Shown here one piece after another: positions 11,810 through 52,100 of a DNA stretch of 64,000 bases. The DNA is from Bacillus subtilis subsp. subtilis str. 168. Its GTDB lineage: Bacteria > Bacillota > Bacilli > Bacillales > Bacillaceae. The DNA is taken from the NCBI RefSeq assembly GCF_000009045.1, contig NC_000964.3, positions 806,001-870,000 on the forward strand, written 5' to 3'. Within the stretch, counting starts at the first letter, position 1; every line of letters begins with the position of its first letter. Position numbers and translations under genes: made by a program. The notes beneath the pieces were generated by a model, which did no database searches, was not told the DNA's origin, and was given only the letters and a program-made list of their open reading frames with translations.

Positions 11810-12829
11810 TCAGCTCGGATCACTGACCTTGATCAGCTGTTTCCCTTTATTTTCTCCCTTAAATAAACCGAGAAACGCGTCAGGAATGTTTTCGAAGCCT
11901 TCTGTGATGGTTTCCTCGTAATGGAGTTTACCAGCCTTCAGCCATTCTGCCAGCTGTTTTGCTCCCTCAGAAAAACGATCGGAGTAGTCGCTTACGATAA
12001 AGCCTTGCATCAGCGACTTCGTTTTAATGAGTTTTGATTGGACACGAGGGCCCATGTCATCTGCTTCGCTTTCTGCGTTATAGGAAGAAATGGCGCCGCA
12101 CACCGGAATGCGGGCAAATTCATTGAGCAGATTCATCACCGCGTCTGAAATCGGTCCGCCGACATTGTCAAAATACACATCGACACCGTCAGGACAAGCG
12201 TTTTGAAGCGCTTTTTGGATATCATCCGCTGTTTTGTAATTGATGGCTTCGTCAAACTGAAGCTCCTGTTTTAAATAGTCGATTTTTTCATCAGAGCCCG
12301 CGATGCCGACGACTCGCGCGCCTTTGATTTTGGCAATTTGCCCGACTGTTGAACCGACGGCTCCGGCAGCTCCTGAGACAACCACGGTTTCGCCTTCCTT
12401 CGGGCGTCCGATGTCCAGCAATCCGAAGTATGCTGTTAAGCCGGTCATTCCCAAAATGCCGAGATAGGCCGAAGCGGGAGCAAGGCTTGTATCAATTTTT
12501 CGCAAGGCAGACTCGCTCACAGCGGAAAATTCCTGCCAGCTGAGATTTCCGATGACGATATCGCCTTTTTTCAGATGATTCCCGTCTGACACAACTTCAG
12601 CGATAACCCCTCCAGAAAGCGCTTTATCCAAGGCGAACGGCTCAACATATGACTTCGTATCCTGCATACGGCCGCGCATATAAGGGTCAACCGATACATA
12701 AAGCGTTTTGACAAGCACTTCCCCTTGCTTGGGTTCAGGAACCGGAATGGTTTCAAAGCGAAAGTCTTCATGAACAGGAATACCTTGTGGACGTCTTGCT
12801 AATTGAATTTGCTGCTGAGATGCTGTCAT
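11810..12829 (-). CDS. yfmJ: NADP-dependent Zn-independent MDR oxidoreductase (CurA/PGR-like), 339 aa
   Basis: LARRPQGIP, SVDPYMRGRM, GMTGLTAYFGL, VSGAAGAVG, DVYFDNVGG, GKQL; RBS GGAGG. Confidence 0.93.
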   Translation of the reverse strand: MTASQQQIQLARRPQGIPVHEDFRFETIPVPEPKQGEVLVKTLYVSVDPYMRGRMQDTKSYVEPFALDKALSGGVIAEVVSDGNHLKKGDIVIGNLSWQEFSAVSESALRKIDTSLAPASAYLGILGMTGLTAYFGLLDIGRPKEGETVVVSGAAGAVGSTVGQIAKIKGARVVGIAGSDEKIDYLKQELQFDEAINYKTADDIQKALQNACPDGVDVYFDNVGGPISDAVMNLLNEFARIPVCGAISSYNAESEADDMGPRVQSKLIKTKSLMQGFIVSDYSDRFSEGAKQLAEWLKAGKLHYEETITEGFENIPDAFLGLFKGENKGKQLIKVSDPS

Positions 12830-12929
12830 TTTCATCCTCCTATCACTTGGTTGACACCACTGTAACATGGACAGGAGAGGAAATACAAAAGGTAAGCTGG
12901 CATACAAAAAAGGTTATAGATGAGCTTAT

Positions 12930-13235
12930 GCTTTCTACAAGCTCTTTTGTTTTAAAAGTTCTCTTTAGTCATTTATCATTATTAGAAAACAGAACAGAAA
13001 AAGAGCTCCTGTACACCTAGCTAAGATTGGCTAGTGTGTATGTCGATTCTTTTTCATATTCTTGCAAGCATCTGCGAGGGGGAGCTTAGTCGTTCACATT
13101 TTGCTTTCGCATCAATCTGCAATAGCAAAGTCTATGCGATTTTTTTACATCAGCAAAGATTTGTTCAATTTTTTCCTTTTATGCCGAGTTTTTCTGAAAC
13201 AGATAATTGATGGTACTCAACCATTTTCTTTTGGT
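12930..13235 (-). mobile_element. Degenerate 3' remnant of an IS1182-family-like transposase (left copy)
   Basis: Minus strand reads ...QLSVSEK / KEKIEQIFADVKKSHRLCYCRLMRKQNVND* / ACKNMKK with stop and frameshifts; resembles, from memory, the IS1182 C-terminus KEKIERSFADSKQLHGLRYCRLRG...ACQNMKKIA. Confidence 0.65.
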
Positions 13236-13310
13236 CAATAAAGTAATGTTTACTTATTAATTAAACACGCGAAAAAGCAAACGAAAACATAATTAAATTT
13301 TATATATTTA

Positions 13311-14531
13311 TTAAAAGCTTATATGTTTATTTACCTTTTTTTTGAATTGTAATTGAGAAAATCCATATATTGCGGACACTAATAAAAGAATACCTGCTGA
13401 AACATAAACTAAACGAACTCCAAGGAAATCTGAAATAGCCCCTATAGCCAGAATTGAAAACATAAAAATGAACTGTACTAAAGAAGACCTTGCAGACATT
13501 ATATTAATTCGAGTTTGCTCGGTTGTTATGTTCTGAATAAGTGTTTCTTGTGTAAGATCTCTTAATATATAAGCCGGCCCCATAAAGAGAACCAAAATTA
13601 GAGCTAAGTATGAATTACTTATAAAACCATATATTAAAGTTAAACTTCCATATGAGACAGCGCCAATTAACATAAAATTAATTAACTTATTTTGAAATCT
13701 CTCCGACAGCTTATATATTATAAATCCCCCTATCATCGAACCTAAATAATATGCTCCATTAATAAATCCCCACCATGATTCTCCTTTATGCAAGACTTCG
13801 TTAACGAAAGCTAAAGAGACAGATCCTATCCAAATCATTCCTGCCCATGACTCAATTAAATCCATAATAATAATTGTTCTAAGTTTCTTTTGGCTAAATA
13901 AATACCGCCAACCACTTACTATACTCTTATTGGGAGAATTTTTTTCACGTATGACAGAATTAGCGTGGCCATGTGGTAGACAAAATAAAAGAGAAAGAAG
14001 AGATGTAAACAACAAAAAGATAGTAAGTATAATGGTATATCCCTCACCTAAAAATGCAATTATGAGACCACCTAAAGACCAGCCTACAAATTGAAAAGTT
14101 TGGTCCACTGTAGATAATAATCCATTTGCTTTTACTCTTCTATCAGGAGAGATTATTTCCCCTATAATTGCACTTTTTAAAGGTGAGAACCATCCATTAA
14201 AAAAGGAAATACAGCTAATAATAATAAAGACTAAAATGAGAGTTTGATTAGAGTAAGTTCTTAATAAAGCATAGAACAAACATATTAATAACAGCATTTG
14301 TATCAATTGAGAAATAATTATTGTAAGAGGCAGTTTTAATCGAATTGTTATTAACGGTAATATAGCACTTCCAAAAATACGAAAAATAATACTTATTAAT
14401 GTCACCATAGAGGCGATGGTTGTCGAATTGGTCATTTTAAACAAAAACGAAATCACTACCATAGTATATAGAGAAAAACCTAAATTTGTAGTGGTCTGGC
14501 TAAATAAAATAGAATAATAACCTTTACTCAT
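13311..14531 (-). CDS. yfmI: MFS exporter (DHA3/MefA-like), 406 aa, AT-rich
   Basis: About 12 TM segments; SQTTTNLGFSLY N-terminus, PLKSAIIGEII, RVKANGLLSTVDQ; RBS AGGGAGG. Confidence 0.9.
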   Translation of the reverse strand: MSKGYYSILFSQTTTNLGFSLYTMVVISFLFKMTNSTTIASMVTLISIIFRIFGSAILPLITIRLKLPLTIIISQLIQMLLLICLFYALLRTYSNQTLILVFIIISCISFFNGWFSPLKSAIIGEIISPDRRVKANGLLSTVDQTFQFVGWSLGGLIIAFLGEGYTIILTIFLLFTSLLSLLFCLPHGHANSVIREKNSPNKSIVSGWRYLFSQKKLRTIIIMDLIESWAGMIWIGSVSLAFVNEVLHKGESWWGFINGAYYLGSMIGGFIIYKLSERFQNKLINFMLIGAVSYGSLTLIYGFISNSYLALILVLFMGPAYILRDLTQETLIQNITTEQTRINIMSARSSLVQFIFMFSILAIGAISDFLGVRLVYVSAGILLLVSAIYGFSQLQFKKKVNKHISF

Positions 14532-14728
14532 ATGTATCCTCCCTTGGAATAATTTTTCTCGGTAAAGAGCTTAAACATATTTAAACACCTTAAAACAACA
14601 AAAGTAAAGAAAAAATTTCCTTGTAAACTATTTACTTTTATTCTATTTATTGTTATTGTTTATTTAAGTTCTCTGACTATTCTATCAATATTCAGGGAAC
14701 CACATATCTTATTAAAGGGGGGAAAACC

Positions 14729-14800
14729 ATGAGAAAATTAAGAAAAAACTGGAGAAAATCGATTGTTAGCCCGGTTCTTTATACTAATGAAAAATGGTAA
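14729..14800 (+). CDS. yfmH: 23-aa peptide MRKLRKNWRKSIVSPVLYTNEKW (below ORF-track cut-off)
   Basis: AAAGGGGGG RBS, 6 nt to ATG 14729, TAA at 14798-14800; directly upstream of yfmG. Confidence 0.75.
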   Translation: MRKLRKNWRKSIVSPVLYTNEKW

Positions 14801-14808
14801 ACACTTAG

Positions 14809-14831
14809 GGAATAGCATTTAATGCTATTCC
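14809..14831 (+). other. Perfect 11-bp inverted repeat between yfmH and yfmG
   Basis: GGAATAGCATT-T-AATGCTATTCC. Confidence 0.85.
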
Positions 14832-14866
14832 TTATTTCAACAAACAAATCGGGAGGTTATCGTAAT

Positions 14867-16330
14867 TTGACTCTATTAATGCAAGATCATAAATCAATTT
14901 ACAATAAAGATATAGAAATATTAATTGAAGTTGAAGAACTTATTACTTCTGTTCCAGAAAATAAAAAAAATGATTTTAAGAGTTTAATCGATAATAGAAT
15001 TATGACTCTACTAAATAAAATTCAACACCCTGTAGCAGCGGAAAATGTGTTTGGGATGTGTATTGCTTATCCGAATACTTACATAAGGTATAGATTAATT
15101 GATTTCGTTGAAAAATGGGTACCTTATTTCTCTGCTGTAGAAACTATAATCAATCTAACCCAGGATCCGGATGATTTAGTTTCTTTTAAAGCTATGGATG
15201 TCTGTGCAAATCATAAAATTGAAGAATCTGTAGCATATTTGTCTTCGATTATTGATGATGTCCGGGAGAGTATAAGCTACCCTAAAAAACCTGTGGGATT
15301 AGGGGCCCAAAAAGTATTAAGTACATTATTAGATATATTCGGTGTTGAAAAACATGAAGAGCTAGTAATGCTAAAAAATTATTTTGATCAAAATGGTATA
15401 CTTCCTAATAACTTTGACTTTGAAGAAAAAATTCCTCAAAGTCTAATAGAGGAATTCGAAAAAACAGAAGAAGATGGGATGATTTTAATTCCGGGTGGCT
15501 TTTTTGAATTCGGTTTAAATGAAAATGAAATTCCTGACAAAACATTTAATTGGAAAGATGCTGTTCCTAGACAAAAAGTATGGTTACCTCCATTTTTTAT
15601 CGATAAGTATCCTGTTACAAATAAAGATTATGATATCTTTACCGAGTTCATAGAGGAAAATGGGCATATATTCTGTCATCCTAATGAACCGCAGAATAAA
15701 CAACATAGAAGAAATACATATTGGGATGATAGGTATTTAGATAATCATCCCGTTACAGGTATAGATTTTTATGATGCATTTGCTTACGCAAGATATAAGG
15801 GGAAAGAATTGCCAACCGAGTTTCAATGGGAAAAAGCTGCTCGAGGCGAAAAGGGTAATGTCTGGCCTTGGGGAGATAAATTTGATCCTGCAAAGGTTCA
15901 ATATGCTGGAAGTCTTTATAATGAACCCATTACTTCTTTAAAGTCCTGGAGAGAAAATTTATTAAAAGCTCATGCTGATAAAGAATTAAATCATTTAACA
16001 AGTGATATTTTTGAACAAAATGGTGAAAGTCCCTATGGAGTATGCGGTATGATCGGCGGAACATGGGAGTGGACTAGAAGTGAGCTTAAAACAAAGAGAG
16101 CTTTCCACCCTATTTTTGAGAATGTACCATTTAATAGTGTTAACTCATTTGCCGTTCTTAAAGGAGGATCATTCTTCTCTCATCCAGGCTTAATGTTCCC
16201 TTCTTTTAGAGCAAAAGATATTCCTTTCTGTCGACACAATGAAATGGGGATTAGATGCGTAAAGAATATTCCAGTATATAAAATTAGAGAATCAATTAAT
16301 GGGCCAATTACTAATAAAGCAATTTATTAA
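14867..16330 (+). CDS. yfmG: FGE/SUMF1-sulfatase-modifying-fold protein with helical N-terminal domain, 487 aa
   Basis: MILIPGGFFEFG, FFIDKYPVTN, HPVTGIDFYDAFAYA, LPTEFQWEKAARG, WPWG, SPYGVCGMIGGTWEWT, LKGGSF, GIRCV; GGGAGG then TTG at 14867. Confidence 0.88.
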   Translation: MTLLMQDHKSIYNKDIEILIEVEELITSVPENKKNDFKSLIDNRIMTLLNKIQHPVAAENVFGMCIAYPNTYIRYRLIDFVEKWVPYFSAVETIINLTQDPDDLVSFKAMDVCANHKIEESVAYLSSIIDDVRESISYPKKPVGLGAQKVLSTLLDIFGVEKHEELVMLKNYFDQNGILPNNFDFEEKIPQSLIEEFEKTEEDGMILIPGGFFEFGLNENEIPDKTFNWKDAVPRQKVWLPPFFIDKYPVTNKDYDIFTEFIEENGHIFCHPNEPQNKQHRRNTYWDDRYLDNHPVTGIDFYDAFAYARYKGKELPTEFQWEKAARGEKGNVWPWGDKFDPAKVQYAGSLYNEPITSLKSWRENLLKAHADKELNHLTSDIFEQNGESPYGVCGMIGGTWEWTRSELKTKRAFHPIFENVPFNSVNSFAVLKGGSFFSHPGLMFPSFRAKDIPFCRHNEMGIRCVKNIPVYKIRESINGPITNKAIY

Positions 16331-16384
16331 TCATTCTAGGTTAGAGACTTGATAAAAGTATACTAACATTGTGTAGTAATGTTC

Positions 16385-16670
16385 AGCTTGTAGAAAAAAC
16401 AATGTTTTTTCTACAAGATTTTATTTTAAATGCTTTTCAAAATTATCAGGGATTGAGAATCAGAAAAAGAGCCATTAAGCTCGATCTTAGCTAGGTATTA
16501 CGATCTTCTGTATATTATTGTGAGAAATATAGAAGATTCAGTTAGTTAGCATTTCGATTTTAAGCTGAGCCTGCAATAGCAAAGCATCTGTTTTGATTAT
16601 TCTTTTTCTGATACATAAGCTAATTTTGTCGCTTTTCTTTTTTGTCTTTTCACGCATTTCGAGGATGACT
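16385..16670 (-). mobile_element. Second, more decayed IS1182-like 3' remnant (right copy), same orientation as the left copy
   Basis: Shares TTTCTACAAG, CAGAAAAAGAGC and CTGCAATAGCAAAG with the left copy in the same order; minus strand reads RNA*KDKKEKRQN*L..., KQMLCYCRL, NIQKIV..LAK. Confidence 0.6.
16387..16427 (+). terminator. 14-bp perfect hairpin plus T run after yfmG (probably also part of the IS end)
   Basis: CTTGTAGAAAAAAC-AAT-GTTTTTTCTACAAG followed by ATTTTATTTT. Confidence 0.7.
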
Positions 16671-16850
16671 TACTATAATTCTTTCAGCTTTTCTATGTGT
16701 TAAGATTCGAATAGATGAAATAACTTTAACAAGTTGGTCAATAAGAACAGATTTAACTTTATGTTAAAAGAGTATCTCGTATAGAACATAAGAAGAATGA
16801 CGAGTTTTTTAAGATTATCATCAATTATGTGAGAATAAAATATTATAAGG

Positions 16851-16883
16851 GAAAATGAAGGCTGTCACGTTTCTCGACAGCCC
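16851..16883 (-). terminator. Terminator of the yfmCDEF operon
   Basis: GGCTGTC / GACAGCC stem; T-rich tail on the minus strand. Confidence 0.65.
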
Positions 16884-16902
16884 TAGGGAATTCCTCTCCT
16901 TT

Positions 16903-17703
16903 TCATTTCGCCCGTAATTTCGGGCACAGTCCCGTCGGCAGGCACATTGGCTTCTGGTCGATCGGGCTTCTCATGATGCAGCATTCCAAGCCGAAGACTT
17001 CACGGAAAAATGGCTGGGTGAACACATCTTCCGGTGTTCCGGCGTTGTATATTTTTCCGTCCAGCACACTGATCAGATAGTCAGCATATTGAGCGGCTTG
17101 GTTTAAATCATGGAGCACCATGACAACGGTGCGGCCATGGTCGCGGTTCAGCTTTTTCAGCAGTTCAAGCACTTCAATCTGATGTGAGATGTCTAAATAC
17201 GTGGTCGGCTCATCAAGCAAAAGCAAATCAGTGCCTTGCGCAAGTGCCATGGAAATCCAGGCTCTTTGTCTTTGGCCGCCTGAGAGGGCATCAAGTGTCC
17301 GATCCTTCAGTTCAATCATGCCCGTTGCTTCCAGCGCCCACTCTACCATGTCATGATCCTCTTGGGTATGCTTGGATAACAGCTTTTTGTGAGGATGTCT
17401 GCCAAAATAGCATAATTCCTCTACCGTCAATCCTTCAGGAGCCTGAGGAGATTGTGGAAGAATGGCCAGTTTTTTTGCGACTTCTTTTGATGGCTGGCGG
17501 TGGATGTCTTTTCCTTCTAGTAGCACTGTACCGCTTTTTGGGGCCATCAGCCTGGCGAGCGATTTGAGGATTGTTGATTTACCGCAGCCATTAGCGCCGA
17601 TGAGCGCAGTGATTTTTCCTTCTTCTATCTTTAAGTCGACTCCGTCAATAATCACTGTACTGTCATATGAAAGAGTGAGCTGGTCTGCAGCCAGTTTTCC
17701 CAT
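16903..17703 (-). CDS. yfmF: Ferric-citrate ABC importer ATPase, 266 aa
   Basis: [43 protein letters not shown]. Confidence 0.95.
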
Positions 17704-49115: not shown

Positions 49116-52100
49116 ATGCCTGATTCGCTCTATTCTGTTTTCTCCTCTGATGTAAGTACATTGCCGTTCCGAGTGCGCTGATCAGAAATCCGGCCAACAG
49201 GATCGAGTACATGGATGTGGCTGTGTCCGGAAGCAGGCCGCCAGCCGGACCGTCTGTTCCTGATCCGCCCGAACCGTTTCCACCAGAGCCGTTAGTCGGT
49301 TGAGTGCCGGGAGGCGTATCATTTCCTCCGTTTCCGTCAGTTGGCTGTTTTCCGCCTGGTTTGTCGGAGCCTCCGCCATGATTGCCGTCATCACCGCCTG
49401 TCGGTTGATCTGACGGGAATGCCGGCGGTTTGTTGTTTGAACCGGAATTTAAGATCGTGTATTCGCTGAAGTGGTTTGTATATCCTGTCACCATATCATC
49501 ATCGACTGATCCGTGACCTGTCTTTGTGAAAGCTTTCTTTTTTCTATCGACGTGATAAATGGCAGGGTTATGGGCTTCTTCAATATCAAACATGCGAAGC
49601 GAAAGCTGTACGGGCTCCTTGAATGATTTTATTTCTTTTCCTTTTTGCTTCACTGTAAAGTCATATACATCTGACAGTGACACATCCAATTCTCCCGTAG
49701 ACTTGATTCCGATTGCAGTGTCTGCGGTTTTAAGGTTCGCCATTGGCATCTTCATGCTGTACCAGTAGTTGAACATCGTCAATGAAGGATCTGACTCTCT
49801 TTCTTTCAAAAGTTTGACCTGATCTTTTTTCACTTTAAGATTGATAGGCTTCTCTTGAGATCCTTCATGTATTCCATAATAGACAAATGGCGTGTTGGCA
49901 TTTTTAGCATAAATCGCAAATTTGTCTTCATCAAGTGTCCAGCTGCCGTCCTTCTGCTTTGTCGGCAGGAATACTTCTTTGATTCGTCCTTCAACTTTAG
50001 GAGAGACCTTGTTTCCTAGTTTTTTCAGCTGTTCGGTGAAAATCTCATAATCAACGTAGCCAAGGTCTTCACCATGGGAGGCTTCTGTAAAGACAGAATA
50101 TCCGTCTCCTCCGGCACCGACAAAATTATTTGTTGCCACGCGGTAGGTATCATCCGTATTTATAGCAACTTTGTCTCCGTTAGGCGATTCAATTTTCACT
50201 TCTAACACACGGTGTCCAGGTTTGTTGTTTAATGTAAAGGTATATTCGATTCCGGCCACCTGAGGGAAAGCGCCGCCGCCATTTTCCACATTGCTTAGGC
50301 CTTGTTCAAGGGCTTCTTTAATTTGTTTTCCGGTTAAATCGGCCACGTAAAGCGTATTGCCGAACGGCATCACGTTGAGCACCTCGCCGAGTGTGATATC
50401 ACCTTTGTCAATGCCTGCTCTGATGCCGCCGCCATTTGTTATCGCTATTCTGGCGCCGGCTGCTTCTTTCGCTTTTGCCAGCATACCGTCCGCGATGAAG
50501 TTTCCGAGATTCGTTTCTTTCGTGCGCACATGCTCACGCTGGCCGTCAAGCGCCACATCCGTGTAGCCGACTTTTTCATTTTTCACGTCCTCTAATTCAT
50601 TTTTGAACTGATCGAGCTCTTGTTTTGCTTCTGGGTTTTCTTCTGTATGTTCATCAATTGGCAGCACGCTCAGATTTGATTTATCTGTTTGCACAACGCC
50701 TTTTTCATCAAACGCGACATCAACGCGCCCCAAGAATTGGCCGTATTCTTTTGCCTGCGCCACGATCGTCGGTTCTTCGTTGTTCACGACCTCCATTTTG
50801 TCTACGAGGGTGTGAGTGTGTCCGCCGATGATCAAATCAATGCCTTTTACTTTTTTGGCTAGCTCAAGATCCCGGTTATGTCCGATGTGGGTTAAAGCAA
50901 TAATTTTATTTACCTTTTCTTCTTCTTGAATCGCTTTGACGGTGTTTTGTGCTGTTTCAAAGGCATCATTGAATACGATGCTTTTGCCCGGGCTTGATGT
51001 GGTGGCTGTATCTTCTGTTGTCAGGCCGAATACGGCGACTTTCTCCCCGTCAACGTCTAACAGAATGTAAGGGTGAATGCCGGCCTCTTTCTTTTCACCT
51101 GCCGTAAAGGTTTGCGGCTTTTTGACAAATGATTTCAGCTTGGGCTCATTTGACACATCTACGTTTGCACTGACAATCGGAAATTCCGGCGCTTCAAAGT
51201 GATAGCGGTTCGCCGGATCAACGGTTGCGCTGTTTCCGCTTAGAAAATCAGAAAGCACCGTCGGGCCTTTGTCAAATTCATGGTTTCCGAAGGTCATGGC
51301 GTCATAGCCCATCATGTTCATCATTTTCAGATCGGCCAAACCGTTCCATTTAGTAAAATACAGATCGCCGGAAAACACATCTCCCGCATCAAGGAGAATA
51401 TTGTGATTTGTTTCGCTGCGTACTTCGTTGATTTTCGTCATTCGTCTCGCTGCATCATCGAGATGGGCGTGCGTATCATTGGTGTGCATGACGGTCAGAT
51501 CCCACAGTCCGTCTTTAGGAGGATCTGGATTTGAATCATCATCGAATTGCAGCTTATACACACCATAGCCTTCATTCGCAGACTTGCCTACATAAGCGAC
51601 ATCGTCTGCTTTATCGGCAAATGGCTTGGCCAAAAGCGAGGATTCAAACGTCAGATTCGTGCCGGAAACAGGCGCGATTGACCAGTTGTTGTCTGCTTTT
51701 GGATTGACTGTTTTTTGTTCAATAATGTAATCCATCAGCACCTGCCTATTTTCAACTGCAGAGCCGTGGACAATTTTATCGCTCGTCAGATGAGGGAACC
51801 CGCCGCCTCCGGACGCACGATAGTTATTGGTGACTACGAGAAATTCCTGGCTTGGGCTGATCGGCTTGCCTTCATAGGAAAGATTGATGATACGGGATGA
51901 ATCCGCATTGATCACTTTTCCGTTCTCATTGTATTTAGCCGGTTTTGTCACATCGACCTGATATGTGACACCGTCAATCACGTCAAAATTATAGGAGCGG
52001 AAATTCTCGTTCAGCAAGGCCTGGTCGCCGCCTTTAGCTGGATCAATTTGATTGAATTGGCCTGCTGACATCTCCAGCCAGTCCTTGACCTCGCTGCCTG

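Follow-up and report, generated by a model that had tools for sequence, protein, structure and literature searches.

A decayed IS1182-family insertion sequence at the edge of the low-GC yfmI–yfmG island of Bacillus subtilis 168

Palindromic or hairpin targets have been described for some members of the IS1182 family of insertion sequences (PMC5678879, PMC4923244), and IS1272 of staphylococci, a member of this family, inserts into stem-loop targets (PMC5678879). TnSha1 comprises IS1272, a neighbouring gene and an alternative end, which move as a unit (PMC4923244); its insertions occur in terminator hairpins, with partial deletion and without duplication (PMC4923244; PMC5678879). In Bacillus genomes, ISBpu1 has been recorded among IS1182/IS3 hits (PMC10780176). 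Strain 168 of Bacillus subtilis has been described as lacking typical insertion sequences (PMC2867830), in agreement with the first-pass annotation of the present sequence, which regarded the 168 lineage as free of intact elements. No paper on the relics reported here was found in the literature searched.

The DNA analysed, referred to below as the window, is a stretch of 64,000 bp (positions 806001–870000 of the single 4,215,606-bp contig of strain 168). Between approximately 12800 and 16900 of the window the GC content falls from 45–50% to 29–35%, and this region holds a small island (Table 1). The genes encountered in and around it are those of a DEAD-box helicase, an acetyltransferase, the oxidoreductase yfmJ (minus strand, its 5' side ending near 12907), yfmI, yfmG and the ABC ATPase yfmF (16903–17703, minus strand); the names yfmJ, yfmI, yfmH, yfmG and yfmF are assigned from the B. 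subtilis 168 map as we understand it. The sequence of yfmG presumably resembles a formylglycine-generating-enzyme type domain, and we take yfmH to be the leader upstream of yfmG, corresponding to the published leader-peptide switch. Rfam gave no match in window 12500–17200, and neither Rfam nor the list of open reading frames revealed another mobile element in the island. At its left edge lies relic A, which is a decayed and dead 3' end of a 1560-bp IS1182-family insertion sequence and is somewhat longer than the segment 12930–13235 of the first-pass annotation.

The first lead to its identity was a DNA search of the genome itself with window 12910–13310, which returned a better preserved look-alike at 4.172 Mb (relic C). 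Used as a query against 49 genomes of the genus, this look-alike gave hundreds of matches, many of them multicopy, and intact copies encoding a 450-aa transposase were multicopy in other Bacillus species. Comparison of copies within and between genomes fixed the length of this living insertion sequence (IS), which belongs to the B. subtilis and B. pumilus groups, at 1560 bp; an intact copy is L031:1144–2703. The ends are imperfect inverted repeats, with TCAG at the start and CTGA at the finish, and both form strong hairpins with a T-run behind them. Its transposase, P0001, is an uninterrupted 450-aa open reading frame at one locus, is assigned to the IS1182 family by NCBIfam model NF033551 (E 4e-144; 481 bits, the cut-off being 270) and contains the Pfam domains DUF772 and DDE_Tnp_1_6. 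Plasmid copies 94.8% identical to the intact IS bear the PGAP label 'IS1182 family transposase', and we take ISBpu1 to be the IS1182 member among the Bacillus hits mentioned above. At each of the nine intact copies inspected, a terminator-like palindrome of 17–25 bp is directly repeated on either side; the living IS therefore targets terminator hairpins and duplicates them whole.

When P0001 was searched against the whole 4.2-Mb genome by tblastn, relic A was recovered as residues 369–392 and 399–445 (E 8e-6), and an nhmmer search of the whole genome, using a DNA profile of ten intact IS copies from ten loci, returned window 12912–13235 at E 4.8e-37. Relic A aligns to the last ~350 bp of the living IS, that is, to the C-terminus of the transposase and the right end, and it keeps roughly the final 80 transposase codons, residues ~369–445 of 450, with two frameshifts and one in-frame stop. 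The first-pass annotation had read three minus-strand peptides with two shifts of frame and had compared them with an IS1182 C-terminus. Translation bears this out: the three pieces are present in three different frames and are collinear with P0001, the end of which matches the C-terminus given there exactly. The middle piece, covering the region with the conserved glutamate-lysine motif, was the only one significant on its own (E 5e-7) when 2,837 six-frame fragments were searched with a protein profile that we built from intact transposases. A check with the DDE_Tnp_1_6 profile, which had been proposed, did not succeed; no Pfam family, including this one, was matched at E up to 10 by any single fragment of relic A, of its B. 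spizizenii copy or of relic C, because the pieces (20–66 aa) are too short to score. It was thus by comparison with intact IS copies that the relic was identified. In this comparison relic A falls within the DDE_Tnp_1_6 part of the transposase (residues 324–442) and runs on into the IS right end, where an IS1182-type terminal inverted repeat aligns to IS positions 1500–1558. At genome position 3100524, 17 nt of coding DNA match the relic exactly; this was set aside as chance.

Relic A is ~79% identical (ungapped) to the living IS, with many indels, and its GC content is 33%, compared with 41% in the corresponding part of the living IS. It is out of frame and truncated at the 5' side, this inner truncation falling right beside the yfmI stop, and the right end abuts conserved flanking sequence, with a weak hairpin fold (z -1.4). 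The DDE catalytic triad is incomplete, only the C-terminal stretch being left and the region of the two aspartates being absent, so the element is dead; this rules out activity, not ancestry. Relic A encodes nothing usable, having lost both catalytic aspartates and the N-terminal part that binds DNA. A change specific to 168 was considered for the frameshift that separates pieces 1 and 2, since the other two species carrying the relic have an extra base near window 13176, and this was rejected on finding that their translated copies are also out of frame. No terminator-like hairpin was found in window 13261–13310, between the yfmI stop and relic A, and yfmI transcripts may read through the relic towards the promoter region of yfmJ.

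A second IS copy, element B, is found ~3.5 kb from relic A in the same orientation. It has lost ~1 kb of the transposase gene from its middle, with a left part (IS 4–186) at 16706–16882 (nhmmer window 16724–16882, E 3.7e-12) and a right part (IS ~1288–1560) at 16383–16643 (nhmmer window 16384–16642, E 2.7e-11), the last 12 nt of the right end being identical to the living IS. Relic A and element B are 79% identical (ungapped) to each other and each is 79–80% identical to the living IS, a mutual identity compatible with a possible origin from twin copies. In the direction of the IS, the parts follow one another as the left end of B, the gutted B, the right end of B, yfmG, yfmH, yfmI, the truncated A and the right end of A.

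The first-pass annotation had placed the relic at the left edge of an island, and this placing is upheld by seven congeners in which window 12913 is joined directly to 16885, with 2–10 bp between. Immediately past yfmF, the empty site contains a perfect hairpin with a 12-bp stem, bordered by A- and T-runs (-27.4 kcal/mol, z -5.8). In the filled site this terminator palindrome is split inside its 5' arm, with ~0–4 nt missing, and alignment of the filled and empty sites gave no target duplication around the island. The filled site cannot regenerate an intact hairpin and the empty sites are therefore ancestral. Both edges of the island (12914 and 16884) lie within ~5 bp of IS termini, namely the right end of relic A (~12911) and the left end of element B (~16886), and these outer ends face outwards as one left and one right end.

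Table 1. Features of the island, of its IS1182-family relics and of the related relic elsewhere in the genome. Positions are those of the window unless marked as genome.
Feature	Position	Strand	Content	Evidence
Island	12914–16884	.	3,971 bp, 29–35% GC; yfmI, yfmH, yfmG	Seven congeners without it
Relic A	12911–13260	-	IS ~1206–1558 of 1560; transposase C-terminus, 3' untranslated part, right terminal repeat	tblastn, blastn, pairwise alignment, nhmmer
Right terminal repeat and hairpin of relic A, degenerate	12911–12962	-		Alignment to IS 1500–1558
Peptide piece 3	13049–13069	-	Transposase residues 435–441	Translation, tblastn; protein profile rank 5th of 2,837
Peptide piece 2	13089–13178	-	Transposase residues 399–428; in-frame TAA at 13086–13088	Translation, tblastn; E 4.9e-7 alone
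Peptide piece 1	13189–13260	-	Transposase residues 369–392	Translation, tblastn; protein profile rank 2nd of 2,837, E 2.2 alone
yfmI	13311–14531	-	MFS transporter, 406 aa, cargo	Open reading frame and homologues
yfmG	14822–16330	+	502 aa, cargo	Open reading frame and homologues
Element B	16383–16886	-	Internally deleted 504-bp IS copy, both ends kept	blastn, alignments, nhmmer
Right-end hairpin of element B	16387–16417	+	14-bp stem and T-run, 57 nt past yfmG stop	-15.7 kcal/mol, z -5.1
Left-end hairpin of element B	16858–16884	-	Directly after yfmF stop (16903)	
Remnant of yfmF terminator palindrome	16887–16903	.	Loop and 3' arm; other remnant at 12906–12913	Alignment of filled and empty sites
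Relic C	genome 4172097–4172778 (L002:1480–2161)	-	IS 835–1556, better preserved	nhmmer, E 2.8e-159

The island resembles TnSha1 in consisting of an IS, adjacent cargo and an extra terminal repeat, with three IS ends in total; its site, a terminator stem split with ~0–4 nt missing and without a target duplication, may likewise correspond to the insertion mode of TnSha1. It differs in belonging to another genus and another IS species, in that the extra end is a real IS fragment of ~350 bp and not a look-alike repeat, and in being fully decayed with a single known insertion site. With classical composite transposons it shares directly oriented IS sequence at either end, with a left repeat at one outer end and a right repeat at the other; unlike these, one flanking copy lacks the left two-thirds, the other lacks the middle, and there is no flanking duplication. 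Fossil and living IS are alike in their TCAG...CTGA type termini, their hairpin ends and their preference for terminator palindromes, but the fossil is not flanked by a duplication of the whole hairpin.

The same island, with its junctions and truncations at the same site, is present in B. spizizenii TU-B-10 and B. inaquosorum KCTC 13429, and relic A is out of frame in all three carriers (168 included). Identity between 168 and the other two carriers is ~91% for relic A, 83–91% for element B, 98–99% for the cargo genes and 91–95% for the flanking core genes. TU-B-10 and KCTC 13429 are 99–100% identical to each other over window 12098–16587, which covers the island and part of yfmJ, against 94–96% in the flanks, and judged by sequence identity this tract is the product of recent interspecies recombination. 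In a gyrB–gyrA tree, which represents a single locus in a recombining group, the three carriers do not form a clade and each is sister to, or grouped with, empty-site genomes. The simplest reading would be a single insertion, after which the island passed between species via flanking homology. A donor was sought among cargo homologues without success. The yfmI homologues of other Bacillus genomes (78% and 67% identity) have neither yfmG nor IS relics alongside. In Anoxybacillus, Anoxybacteroides, Siminovitchia and a Thermoactinomycetaceae MAG, where yfmG homologues form a pair with an MFS gene, there is no IS1182 relic close by.

We consider it probable that the dead IS1182 3' end is one end of a fossil IS-plus-cargo unit, similar to TnSha1, that inserted into the yfmF terminator and was subsequently disseminated. 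The transposase of this IS would have used the outer left end (element B) and the outer right end (relic A), and the IS, the cargo and the extra end would have moved as a single unit, in the manner of TnSha1 with IS1272. The point of insertion would have been the stem of the intrinsic terminator behind yfmF, a palindromic target of the type used elsewhere by this IS; the IS parts would then have decayed, and the island would have been passed among B. subtilis, B. spizizenii and B. inaquosorum by homologous recombination. Transposition as a single unit is favoured by the presence of three IS ends with the cargo between the second and the third, together with the split terminator without duplication, the loss of ~0–4 nt from the palindrome fitting the TnSha1 mode and not the duplication at intact Bacillus copies. 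Counting against it is the same absence of a target duplication when set against the whole-hairpin duplication at nine of nine intact copies. So does the finding that relic A and element B are no more alike than either is to the living IS. Among 49 genomes of the genus and 91 of the family (one genome per species), none showed the unit at a second site or between intact IS copies, and there is therefore no direct sign of movement as a unit. The homologues of the cargo pair in Anoxybacillus and others, lacking an adjacent IS1182 relic, also count against the proposed history as a whole.

It is unlikely, but deserves weighing, that the relics are genuine and incidental, being separate IS copies that happened to lie near cargo which came by another route, such as recombination through flanking homology after transformation; the agreement of IS ends with island edges would then be a by-product. 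Such an origin would accommodate the missing target duplication, the truncation of relic A right beside the yfmI stop and the movement of the island between species together with flanking DNA, as seen in the 99–100% tract that includes part of yfmJ. Against this, both edges lie within ~5 bp of outward-facing IS termini in the correct left and right polarity, the split target is the type of palindrome selected by this IS, and nothing else mobile is present in the island.

An origin in two steps, which we regard as quite unlikely, would have a single IS entering the yfmF terminator first, with incoming IS-cargo-IS DNA then recombining through IS homology. Bacillus is naturally transformable, which counts in favour of such an origin, and the final anatomy and outer ends would be the same. 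The flank at the inner right end of element B is also in its favour, as it contains a small palindrome of its own, unrelated to the yfmF terminator, so that the joining of this end to the cargo took place elsewhere. The scheme calls, however, for one more step and for an intermediate that has not been seen, and a solo IS at the yfmF terminator was found in none of the 49 genomes of the genus. Finally, chance resemblance, in which AT-rich intergenic DNA gave transposase-like peptides, is scarcely credible and was ruled out by the tblastn, blastn and nhmmer matches: only one of the three peptide pieces is significant by itself and Pfam is blank on all of them, but the DNA profile matches at E 4.8e-37 against the whole genome, the three collinear pieces are in the right order and run on into the non-coding end of the IS, and relic A is conserved in two other species.

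Under the favoured history of a transposed IS-plus-cargo unit, the only plausible activity left would be a passive one, exerted by the end hairpins of the gutted element B at the terminator positions of yfmF and yfmG. These hairpins are the only predicted terminators in the right places behind the two genes. The left-end hairpin is located where the original yfmF terminator was broken and is likely, from its predicted fold and position, to be a replacement for it, while the right-end hairpin likely serves as the present terminator of yfmG. The locus may thus offer a natural case in which the end hairpins of an IS have replaced the terminator that they destroyed.

The island is flanked by a clean fossil of a known kind of element, and involves no new mechanism or element type. 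The fossils demonstrate past activity of an IS1182-family element in the lineage of B. subtilis 168, the reference Gram-positive genome, and they would provide a concrete origin for a small, unexplained low-GC island carrying a leader-peptide switch and an enzyme-pump pair. For annotation purposes, relics A, B and C merit pseudogene or mobile-element features.

In the whole 168 genome, the DNA profile at E up to 1 detected four pieces belonging to three elements only, namely relic A, element B and relic C. Relic C retains transposase residues 252–447 (tblastn, E 1e-36), and lies at the edge of a low-GC islet at 4.172 Mb, the second such islet to be bordered by an IS1182 fossil. Nothing convincing was found as a left IS end at the far edge of this islet. 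The right end of relic C abuts a duplicate of ~230 bp from the 3' end of the MFS gene upstream. This MFS fragment is present in three copies (4171120–4171348, 4171854–4172101 and 4176681–4176882), of which the second and third bracket 4.6 kb of 26–35% GC that is absent from B. spizizenii at this site. A broader proposal can be made tentatively, and on balance we would lean slightly against it: that the yfmI–yfmH–yfmG island is a TnSha1-type fossil whose end hairpins have been kept as the yfmF and yfmG terminators, and that IS1182 elements have been recurrent importers of cassettes into terminators of the B. subtilis complex, with spread by transformation. If true, then taken with relic C at the 4.172-Mb islet, it would make the IS1182 family a recurrent vehicle for small gene cassettes.

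Some smaller traces were also noted. Matches of 16–20 nt and 95–100% identity to the left-end hairpin of the IS occur at genome positions 2599467–2599486 and 3888401–3888416 (E about 0.04 each), and these may represent solo ends or else ordinary terminators that happen to have a similar sequence. A family of MITEs of ~180 bp, with TCAG...CTGA termini and a duplicated terminator hairpin on both sides, is present in 168 at genome ~3107025–3107205, between ytvA and yttB, and at about nine other sites (e.g., 687858–688035 and 737370–737548). These MITEs resemble this IS in their termini (~75% alike), their TCAG/CTGA tips and their location at terminators; they differ from the relics in having no transposase-derived interior, in duplicating the whole hairpin, in their number of ~ten copies and in being missed by the full-length IS profile. 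On plasmid pBS32 of NCIB 3610, the ancestor of 168 (NZ_CP034485.1), positions 49228–49600 contain the first 371 bp of this IS at 92.5% identity, with no annotated feature, and related 84-kb plasmids carry a two-piece, internally deleted copy of it.
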